Below, piece by piece: positions 16,729 to 20,922 of a stretch of 64,000 nt of DNA. The translations under genes and the position numbers were made by a program. The notes under the pieces were generated by a model that searched no databases, had not been told where the DNA came from, and was given only the letters and a program-made list of their open reading frames with translations. Position 1 is the stretch's first letter; each line of letters opens with the position of its first letter. This stretch comes from Blastocladiella emersonii ATCC 22665 (taxonomy: Eukaryota; Fungi; Blastocladiomycota), in contig JANHCV010000007.1 of NCBI GenBank assembly GCA_025594325.1, positions 682,001-746,000 of the forward strand, in the 5' to 3' direction.

Positions 16729-17796
16729 TCAGGGTGTCAGCGGACGCACGCCCTCGCGCGCGGGCGTGACGCGCACGTCCCACGGAACGAGCGCGTACTC
16801 GGTCGACACGTTGGTCTGCATCGCGACCGCGGCATGATCCGCGCGAGCGAACACGAGCAGCAACTCTGTATCCGCACTCGCGTCCGCAGCGTCCACTGGT
16901 GGTGCGAACCGGACGACGCGCGCTCTTGTCCCGGGCCACGTCATCTCGAGGTCCGACTGCGAGAGCAACGGTGTTTCGGGATTCGCGGGGACCACCTTGA
17001 GAATGTGCGCGGGGGATGGCGGCGCGTTGGCGAGCGCGTGCGAGACGCCGGGCTTCTCGCGCGGGTGCGGGTTCGGGTTGAGCGTCTCGGCGGGCGCCAT
17101 GTACACCTGGAACGCGTTGAGCGACGGGTCCCAGCACCAGACGGCGACGAGCGTGCTGCCGTTCTGCGCCGGCGGTGGCGGGAAGACGGGGTCGAATTTG
17201 GGGATCAGGTCTTCGAGGCGGAGGCCCGGACTACACACCGGGATCAAGCTCGGCATCAGCACGGTGACGACGCGATAAGTTCGGAGCCACGCGTACATGA
17301 ACGATGCCAGCGACTTATACATGACCACGCGCTTGTGGCCGTACGCGCTCGCATTCGAGTTGGACGTGACGACGACGTGGTCGAGGCCAAAGTACTCGGC
17401 GACGCGGTGCGCGATGAGCCGGCGGTAGGCGTTGGCGGGCGGGAGGTCGAGCCGCGTGCGGTCGGGCGCCCGCAGGAACTCCTCGATCATGTCCTGCAGC
17501 TCGAGGACCAGCTCGCGGTCGACGGGGCTGAACAGGGCGGCGATCAGGAACCCGTCGATGGTCGGCACCGCCACAGCAGCGGATCCGGGGGCCGTATCAG
17601 GCAGGGATTGTTGAGGCACGGGCACCAGCGCTGGAGGCGAAGGTGAAGGTGAAGGTGAAGGTGGGGGTGGCGGTGTGGCTGAGCGCGAGGTCGCCACGGC
17701 CTCGTCCGACTCAGTGGTCGTCGTCGACCGCGAGCGCGGCGCGCGCGGCTTGCGCCGGCGCTTCGAGTTGCGGGGACTGAATGAAGTAGCTAACAT
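16729..17796 (-). CDS. R3H-domain RNA-binding protein with C-terminal RRM-like region (R3HCC1-like); intron 17231-17296
   Basis: R3H core LPPANAYRRLIAHRVAEYFGLDH preceded by LELQDMIEEFL; spliced IPGLRLEDLIP; C-terminal HILKVV...LLLVFARADHAAVAM resembles the R3HCC1 RRM-like segment. Confidence 0.75.
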   Translation of the reverse strand: MLATSFSPRNSKRRRKPRAPRSRSTTTTESDEAVATSRSATPPPPPSPSPSPSPPALVPVPQQSLPDTAPGSAAVAVPTIDGFLIAALFSPVDRELVLELQDMIEEFLRAPDRTRLDLPPANAYRRLIAHRVAEYFGLDHVVVTSNSNASAYGHKRVVMYKSLASFMYAWLRTYRVVTVLMPSLIPVCSPGLRLEDLIPKFDPVFPPPPAQNGSTLVAVWCWDPSLNAFQVYMAPAETLNPNPHPREKPGVSHALANAPPSPAHILKVVPANPETPLLSQSDLEMTWPGTRARVVRFAPPVDAADASADTELLLVFARADHAAVAMQTNVSTEYALVPWDVRVTPAREGVRPLTP

Positions 17797-18113
17797 GGAA
17801 TCGATGCAGTTCGTGCGAGAGAGGGAGGGGAGTGCGAAGGCGTTGCAACAGTTCACGGCAGAGCAACCGCGTGGGCGTCGAGGTGTGGCGAAGGCAGCCG
17901 CCGCCGCCGCCGCCGCCGCGTGGCCCGCGGGCCGGATGGGTCACGGATTCTGTCCCATGCGTCCCACCGTCACTTCCGCGCTGCTGCGACGTCGTCGAGC
18001 ACGTTTCATCCGCTCATGATACTTGAGCTGATGGGCCGCACGTGTTGGCGCGACGCGTCGCTCTCGCGCGTGTCGGGCAAGCCTCGCGGAGCGAGACACT
18101 TCATCCAACGAAT

Positions 18114-20922
18114 TTATTCCATCTCGCGCTGCACGGCCGCCACCATCTCGGTCCACGCCGTACACCGCCGCGCGTCGCTCTCGAGCGCCTCCCAGTCGGC
18201 CTCGGTGCCGCGCGCGCGGGCCCGTGCCTTGGCGTCCCGCACGACCAGCCGCACGACCGCGACCACTGCCGCGATAGGCACACCCTTGACCATGGCCGCG
18301 CGCACGAGCCGGGGCACGTTACCGTCGACGCGCAGCGCCGCAGCGTCACCGTCGAGCGGGATCCAGTGCACCGCCCACGCGGCGGGCGACGAGACGAACC
18401 GCGTCGCGAGGATCCGCGCGACATTTGCTGCCGCAGGCTCGGCGACAAGGTCGAGCGTCGCGGCGCGGACCCACAGCTTGTGCAGCGCCTCGATGCTCCA
18501 CAGGTCCTCGGCCGTTGCGGGCGCGGACGCCGAGAGATTACCGGGCTGCACGCCGTCGGCAGCAGGAGTGAAGAAGGACCGCAGCGGCGGCGCCTGCGTC
18601 GCGAGGATCGCCGCGTTCGTGAGTCCCGCGACGCTGTCCATGAGCGCCACGGCAAACCGGTCCCACGGTGACTCCGTCTTAGCGCTAAACCGCGCGGGCG
18701 ACAGGAGCCAGGGCAGGAGCAAAGCGTCGACGGGGCTCGCCGCCACCAACACGGGCGACGAGCGCGCGAGCGCGGACCACGGCGGCGGGAGTTGCGCGCA
18801 CGCGACGGTGATGGGGAGCGGAATCCACGCGGACGGGTCGATGGTGGTGAGCTCGCGCGCGACCATCTCGGCGAGGATCGCGAGATTGTCTCCCGTCGGC
18901 GCGATCGCCGAGGTCGCCGGGCACAGCACCTCCTCGAGCGTGTACGCGACGACGTGGAGCAGCCGCTCCGCCGTGTTGCCGAGGTGCGGCCACATGGTCG
19001 GCGGGAGCGGTTTGGGCCCGCACACGCGGAGCCGTACGACGCCGCGGTCGTGAACCGAGAGAAGCAGGGTCGGCGGGACGCCCGCCGCCTGCGTTTGCGT
19101 CGTCGAAGGAGTCGTTCCCGGCATCCCGCCCGCCGCCGCCGAAGATCCGCCGGACGTGACCGAACTGCCCGCAGTCGTCGCCGCGGCCGCGAACGCCGCC
19201 TCGCTCGGGTCGTCGCGCACGCGCGTCCACGCGAGCCACGTATCGTTGGGCAGCCGCCGGGCCTTCTTGAGCGTGTCCATGATGTGCGACACGGCGCGCC
19301 GCACGGCCGCGGGCTGGTACGCGTCGAGGTCATTGCCCGGCTGGCCCGATGCGAGCAGGCCCCACAGCGCCGGGAGCAGCCGCGAGTGCACCCACTTCTG
19401 CTTGACCAAGCACCAGTTGAACAGCGTGCGCGGCACCTCGTGCAGCTTGTCGCCCTTGCTCGCGGCAGCGGCGGCGACGGCGAGTGCAGCGGCCTTGGTC
19501 CCCTTGGCCGGTTTGCCGCTGGTGTTTGGCGGCGGACCGAGGACGGCGCGGACAATCCCGACGGCGTCCTTGTGTGCGTCGTCGCCGCCAAACTCGCCGA
19601 GCCGCGCCACGAGCTGCCGGTGGTACACGGACCCGGCGACGCGCCACGGCGCGGCAGCGAGGGCTGGCGTGATGGCGAGCGGCGCCGCCGCCGTCGTGGC
19701 GCGGAGGTGTGCGGCGAGCGCCGTCGCGTCGTCCAGCGGGACGAGGTCGCCGAGCAGCTCGAACCACACAATCGACGGCGCGACCGTGGGAGCCGAGTCG
19801 GCGGTCGCGGCGAGCAGGCGGATCGGTGCCACGTCGGGAGCCGTGGTATCGGTCGTAGTGGAAGAAGCGGCGCTGCTGGGGAGCGGGAAGATACCGAGCG
19901 AGTTGCGGTGGATCACGCCCGCGAGCCAGGCGTCGTACGCGGGCGGCGTCGGCGCGAGAAACGACCGGACGAGCGCGAGCCCGACGGCGAACCGCGTCAG
20001 GTCTCGCTGCTTGACGGCATCGACCAGGATCGAGTTGACGGCCGATTCCAGCGCCGTGCGGAGCGCATGGCCAGACTCGGCGAGGACGTGGATCACGGCA
20101 AACACGGAAAGCGGGCGCGGCGCATCGAGAACCCAGCGGGCCAGCGTCCGGGCATCCAGGACGCGCGCACCGAGCAGCCGGGCCGCGTTCGTGAGCACGG
20201 ACGTCGGGTCGGGCGCGAGCAGCGACCCACCCTGCGCGAGTCGAGCGCGGCGCTGCAGCCACCGCGGCGCGAGCGCGAGCAGCGAGCCGAGCTTGTCCTC
20301 GCCCGCCATCGCGTCCGCGAGGTTGAACTGGCGCTCGAGGTACGCGTGGAACGCGGCGAGCCCGAGGTCTGGCCGCGCACCGATGCGCTCCGACCACGCC
20401 GGGTGCGACCACACGGAAGCGGCCTGCTTGGACGTGACAGCGGCACCGGCGAGGTGAAGGACGAGCTCGCTCCCGAATCGGGTGCTCGCTGCGAGACCGC
20501 GGGGCGGGTCGTTGGACAGCGCGGCGAGATCAAAGAGGGCGCAGATGCCGGTCGTCTACGCGGCGAAACTGCGTCAGCAAGGGGGTCGACGAAAGCATAG
20601 TGAGACCGCGACGCACCCACTGCGAGTTGGACTGCTGCCAGAGCATGCACCACGCGACGTGGCACCGCGCGACGGCCTCCTCGCGACTCTCGCCGTCGTC
20701 ACCCGGCAGATGGCGCTCTAGGAACTGGACGAGCCGGTCGTGGTTCCACTGCTCGCCTCGCTGTGGCTGCTGCTGCTGCTGCAGGCGCTGCCTTGACTCG
20801 GTCAGGGTGCCGGCGAGACGGCGCCGCTTCCTCGGCGGCAACACGTTACTCGGCGGTTCCTCGGTGCATTGCCATAGGTGATGGAGCGTCCATAGCAGTT
20901 CTGGCGTGAGGGCATCGTTCAT
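18114..20922 (-). CDS. FANCA: Fanconi anemia complementation group A-like protein (exons 20922-20617, 20555-18114; ~915 aa)
   Basis: Ordered segments resembling human FANCA as recalled: LALVRSFLAPTPPAYDAWL; LGDLVPLDDATALAAHL; VPRTLFNWCLVKQKWVHSRLLPALW (cf. [25 protein letters not shown]); IMDTLKKARRLPNDTWLAW (cf. FIESLKRADKIPPSLYSTY); NLS-like PPRKRRRL near the N-terminus. Confidence 0.62.

Follow-up and report, generated by a model that had tools for sequence, protein, structure and literature searches.

The window examined in the present study is a stretch of 64,000 nucleotides from the fungus Blastocladiella emersonii ATCC 22665 (GenBank contig JANHCV010000007.1, positions 682,001 to 746,000), placed on contig 19 of the B. 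emersonii assembly. Its minus strand carries a two-exon gene of 915 codons without an internal stop (Table 1), and the product is probably a divergent, C-terminally shortened homologue of the Fanconi core subunit FANCA. The joined sequence of the two exons aligns without a gap across the splice junction to the orthologue from Catenaria anguillulae, and an unannotated upstream exon in B. britannica ends in W directly before GT, with the intron at the identical position. These observations support the junction. The final approximately 35 codons of exon 1 (HLPGDD...AW.MLW.QS...W) are also kept in the Catenaria orthologue. The 766-codon open frame at 18114–20414 is 100% identical to the deposited NCBI protein H9P43_006178, and both AlphaFold models of the protein (full and domain; pLDDT 48.9 and 61.6) are nearly all alpha-helical. 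The gene is real and intact, in agreement with a preliminary description of this DNA, made from the letters alone, which had reported an intact helical protein of 915 residues. An AATAAA at 18113–18118 overlaps the TAA stop and is a possible poly(A) signal right at the coding end.

Table 1. Positions of the FANCA-like gene, its parts, its neighbour and the Fanconi genes of the genome (window positions, except for the last three rows, which are contig positions)
Feature	Position	Strand	Details
Exon 1	20617..20922	-	102 codons, ATG at 20922
Intron	20556..20616	-	61 nt, GTGCGT...TAG
Exon 2	18114..20555	-	813 codons and TAA stop (18116-18114)
Basic motif PPRKRRRL, resembling a nuclear localization signal	20815..20838	-	Exon 1, residues 29-36 of the 915-residue reading
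Counterpart of the Catenaria Fanconi_A_N stretch	19692..20105	-	Residues 218-355 of P0001; sole region with a sequence-level FANCA signal
Best-conserved family block	19248..19436	-	VP.TLF.WCLVK.KWV..RLLPALWG ... IRRAV..IM..LKK; holds the next two segments
VPRTLFNWCLVKQKWVHSRLLPAL	19436-19365	-	Strongly conserved across three Blastocladiales species
IMDTLKKARRLP	19283-19248	-	Strongly conserved across three Blastocladiales species
Downstream R3H-domain gene	16729-17856	-	R3H Pfam match, residues 906-952 of H9P43_006178
FANCD2	C1:681381-685883		Three exon matches, 75.5, 62.6 and 59.4 bits, above the Pfam cut-off
FANCL	C1:4544172-4544396		FANCL_d3, 41.5 bits, above the Pfam cut-off
FANCI	C15:871368-871646		FANCI_S1, 29.1 bits, above the Pfam cut-off

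The deposited model H9P43_006178 (1142 residues) is referred to as P0001 below. In the protein searches, exon 1 was used separately and the remainder as P0001:1-864, corresponding to residues 45–899 of the 915-residue protein; residues 1–9 of P0001 derive from an alternative 5′ exon in the NCBI model. A HMMER scan of 1.84 billion protein representatives revealed two relatives only, both annotated as hypothetical: ORZ33454.1 of C. anguillulae (985 residues, E 1.4e-75) and KAI9220601.1 of B. britannica (688 residues, an N-terminally truncated model, E 6.6e-28). A word-indexed protein search returned the query's own entry alone among the matches listed, and none of the 272 pattern matches in a metagenome scan with the family alignment was confirmed. 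Since only two relatives were found among 1.84 billion proteins, the family appears, as far as is visible, to be confined to Blastocladiales. Its evolution is fast, with an identity of 32–38% within the order.

The first line of evidence for FANCA comes from the Catenaria orthologue. Its sole Pfam match was Fanconi_A_N (PF15865), with residues 335–447 aligned to profile positions 217–328 of 355. The score (18.8–21.6 bits) was below the gathering cut-off of this family (27 bits); the E-value was 1.2e-3 when the complete protein was searched and between 1.7e-4 and 2.2e-4 when sub-ranges were used. The corresponding region of the B. emersonii protein is interrupted by a Ser/Thr/Ala-rich insertion of approximately 38 residues, which plausibly breaks the profile alignment in this species.

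The second line comes from a protein language model. The ten best family-bearing ESM-Atlas clusters for the Catenaria orthologue were all FANCA (0.91, 175/256 features), as were the five top listed clusters for the B. emersonii protein (0.84–0.82). Scores of this size are rated as leads in ESM-Atlas, and at least 170 shared features are typical of true family members. The cluster nearest to the B. emersonii protein (0.84) was a 583-residue arthropod group carrying Fanconi_A_N and FANCA_helical only.

The third line is structural. Foldseek against the PDB returned only generic ARM, HEAT and karyopherin solenoids for both AlphaFold models (E at least 8e-3). However, when the top 1000 Foldseek chains were re-aligned with VIA-align, the best match for both models was 7kzp_S, a chain of 1250 residues in the human core complex. 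We take this chain to be FANCA from its length, as no other core subunit is presumably larger than about 900 residues. The low-confidence full model gave VIA-align values of 8.9 and 438, with 107–798 aligned to FANCA 265–929 and the alignment running through FANCA 530–929 (the helical/arcN region). The domain model gave 10.9 and 328 (13% identity), with P0001 60–516 aligned to FANCA 203–627. These three lines of evidence are weak and indirect, but they are independent and concordant. Because the Catenaria profile match, the language-model clusters and the best VIA-align match agree, we consider it rather likely that the B. emersonii protein is a true, divergent FANCA homologue with a shortened C terminus.

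Several results weigh against this assignment, and together they leave room for a different origin, namely an alpha-solenoid specific to Blastocladiales without FANCA ancestry, in which the FANCA signals would be chance likenesses between amphipathic helical repeats. Pfam searches with the B. emersonii protein (both open-frame pieces, the NCBI protein and five to ten sub-ranges) found nothing at E<=10 except the R3H domain of the neighbour, and Fanconi_A_N had no six-frame match in the B. emersonii genome. The B. britannica protein did not match Fanconi_A_N, and FANCA_helical (PF24781) and FANCA_arcN (PF24783) did not match the three family proteins or their pieces at E<=10, although, given the alignment of the full model through FANCA 530–929, the fold itself may be present. 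When PDB sequences were searched with phmmer and hmmsearch, neither the B. emersonii protein nor its Catenaria orthologue nor any of three profiles of the family (whole, residues 195–410 and residues 436–530) detected a FANCA chain; the only matches, ADRM1 and a capsid-protein A fusion, were due to chance. The preliminary description had pointed to a residue-level resemblance to human FANCA in VPRTLFNWCLVKQKWVHSRLLPAL and IMDTLKKARRLP; this resemblance was not confirmed. The profile of the block at 19248–19436 matched no FANCA chain in the searched PDB sequences at E<=10 and no Pfam family. An Atlas structure search reached a TM score of 0.32 at most, which is meaningless, and a wider VIA search was topped by eIF2B-epsilon W2, CNOT1 and CID/VHS-like domains. 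Every FANCA signal lies below the confidence line of its own tool. The preliminary description had named the lack of a significant profile or structural match to FANCA as the result that would speak against it and, taken literally, this is what was found for the B. emersonii protein by itself. The small number of relatives also fits an order-specific solenoid. On the other hand, three methods of different kinds selected the same rare family from thousands in a consistent register, the HEAT, ARM and karyopherin families of Pfam gave no match, even a weak one, and a per-library E-value of 2e-4 for a single unique match makes chance unlikely. We regard a solenoid without FANCA ancestry as unlikely, although it is the most serious competitor on ancestry. 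Derivation from another known solenoid family is far less probable still. The family next in the language-model lists was AP-5 zeta (AP5Z1/SPG48), which both Atlas searches placed at ranks 15 and 27, with values of 0.87/0.85 and 0.80/0.78. However, its clusters always ranked below more than 10 FANCA clusters, neither SPG48 nor TPR_AP5Z1 of Pfam matched at E<=10, and no AP-5 chain was present among the structural matches. We rejected AP5Z1 because of its lower rank and the lack of a profile match. The FANCA-likeness proposed in the preliminary description thus receives indirect support only, from the Catenaria relative, the language-model clusters and the VIA-align match, and none from a profile match of the B. 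emersonii protein itself.

Another alternative concerns the ends of the gene. In H9P43_006178, translation begins at an ATG at 20875 in a different frame, and a predicted 61-nt intron deletes PPRKRRRL. At the 3′ end (window 16729–18182, minus strand), a predicted intron of approximately 0.53 kb, from about 18164 to 17631, leads onto the R3H-domain gene. If this model were right, the product would be an RNA-binding fusion protein of 1142 residues without the basic motif. It is the deposited annotation, and the R3H domain is a genuine Pfam match. However, the Catenaria orthologue has no R3H domain and is not fused, its alignment extends to approximately 40 residues before the stop codon of the B. 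emersonii gene, and the open frame continues to the TAA overlapped by AATAAA. Because of these three observations, the fusion is probably an annotation artefact in which two genes were merged. Furthermore, upstream Met codons and a basic N terminus are present within the R3H frame itself, and the fusion requires an intron of approximately 530 nt, whereas the confirmed intron of the gene is 61 nt. The 5′ splice of the NCBI model removes PPRKRRRL, yet the N termini of B. britannica (RKRR in the upstream exon) and Catenaria (RKSKKR...RNKRLR) are also basic. We favour the unspliced 5′ reading because RKRR leads in frame into the conserved B. britannica exon end and because Catenaria carries its own basic stretch. 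Overall, the deposited model is improbable as it stands. The motif noted in the preliminary description is present, given the unspliced reading, and RKRR-type motifs occur in both relatives; nuclear import through it is a prediction. KAI9220601.1 itself begins inside its gene, since an upstream open frame of approximately 130 codons with RKRR precedes it (L007:1-700, MU624794.1).

Vertebrate FANCA is represented by human O15360, by the structure 7KZP and the 6LHS series, and by the Pfam families PF15865, PF24781, PF24783 and PF03511. Similar to vertebrate FANCA, the B. emersonii protein has, in the unspliced reading, a basic N-terminal motif, behind which lies a helical region that may form a HEAT-like solenoid. 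Its structural alignment to the human chain is colinear, and the weak Fanconi_A_N match of Catenaria lies in the matching register. In contrast, it has 915 residues versus 1455 in human FANCA (540 fewer), shows no profile match above threshold, and lacks a counterpart of arcC and the C-terminal domain: FANCA_CTD (PF03511) matched neither the protein nor the genome. The structural alignment stops at FANCA 929, and the protein continues for approximately 120 residues beyond that point. If homologous, it corresponds to the N-terminal domain, the helical subdomain and perhaps arcN of FANCA, and ends where arcC would begin. The shortened C terminus of the preliminary description was thus confirmed. 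In Xenopus, arcC (residues 901–1402) forms the FANCA dimer interface and contacts the C terminus of FANCG, and most disease mutations map to the C-terminal domain taken as a whole (PMC7102982). The 583-residue arthropod cluster carries Fanconi_A_N and FANCA_helical only; therefore, short FANCA-like proteins have a precedent. Like the arthropod proteins (376- and 583-residue clusters), the B. emersonii protein is FANCA-like without an arc-shaped C-terminal domain. However, the arthropod proteins pass the Pfam models, while the B. emersonii protein fails them; its likeness to the arthropod proteins was seen in the language-model clusters.

The gene inventory of the B. emersonii genome was obtained by six-frame profile searches of limited sensitivity, which covered FANCA, FANCC, FANCE, FANCF, FANCL, FANCD2, FANCI and FAAP100. 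The FANCD2–FANCI pair and the FANCL ligase, which constitute the minimal Fanconi pathway, were all detected (Table 1), so that the candidate co-occurs with FANCL, FANCD2 and FANCI, as does vertebrate FANCA. However, FANCC, FANCE, FANCF and FAAP100 had no match at this sensitivity, and no second FANCA was found. The gene set appears to fit the minimal pathway of early-diverging fungi, and the retention of an animal-like core complex, which the preliminary description had suggested, is not supported. At C3:624561-624692, an open frame of 1280 codons contains a RING/PHD match of the FANCL_C type, which is weak and, at 23.5 bits, below the cut-off; it does not represent the FANCL gene.

The occurrence of FANCA in fungi is not new as such. 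Barua, Plecha and Muszewska (2024) surveyed 183 fungal proteomes and reported FANCA, FANCE, FANCL, FANCM, FANCD2 and FANCI in early-diverging fungi, with FANCA limited to Glomeromycotina and Mucoromycotina in their supplement (PMC11061109). Catenaria anguillulae was sampled, but FANCA is missing from the Fanconi genes listed for it, and the survey makes no mention of ORZ33454 (PMC11061109). Allomyces was also sampled, and the rows consulted for it show no FANCA (PMC11061109). No FANCA is listed for Blastocladiomycota in that survey, and a candidate from this phylum appears not to have been known previously. The fungal FANCA proteins of that survey (e.g., Mucor ambiguus GAN01546.1) resemble the Blastocladiales protein in being a FANCA-type subunit beside FANCL and FANCD2/FANCI, and their lineages also have FANCM (PMC11061109). 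They differ in that they were recognized by PF03511/IPR003516 searches, whereas the Blastocladiales protein is devoid of the PF03511 region.

In our view, the B. emersonii protein is probably a nuclear, all-alpha, HEAT-like scaffold and a fast-evolving FANCA orthologue, which would have retained the localization signal and solenoid of the N-terminal region together with the helical/arcN-like central part, and in which arcC and the C-terminal domain were either lost or never present. The basic N-terminal motif may mediate nuclear import, and the HEAT-like solenoid may bind partners of a FANCL-centred ligase. As an accessory scaffold, the protein may assist the nuclear import or chromatin recruitment of this ligase, which would mono-ubiquitinate FANCD2–FANCI during the repair of crosslinks or replication stress. 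Without the vertebrate-type arc dimer, it may act as a monomer or pair by other means. We infer only tentatively, and with considerable doubt, that Blastocladiales retain an arcC-less FANCA working with FANCL, FANCD2 and FANCI without the FANCB/FAAP100, FANCC/FANCE/FANCF and FANCG subunits. If so, an N-terminal FANCA scaffold would have been part of the Fanconi ligase of ancestral opisthokonts, and the dimerizing C-terminal arc would be dispensable or a later addition. Retention of the FANCA core subunit would then extend to another deep fungal branch, and a natural truncation without the C-terminal arc would help to reveal the function of the N-terminal half by itself. This would be an incremental gain, because the Fanconi pathway in early-diverging fungi was already known.

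In B. britannica, a mismatch-repair gene of the MutS family (L007:2777-6115; MutS_I, III, IV and V) lies 60 bp downstream of the FANCA-like gene and in the same orientation, a neighbourhood that neither B. emersonii nor Catenaria shares.
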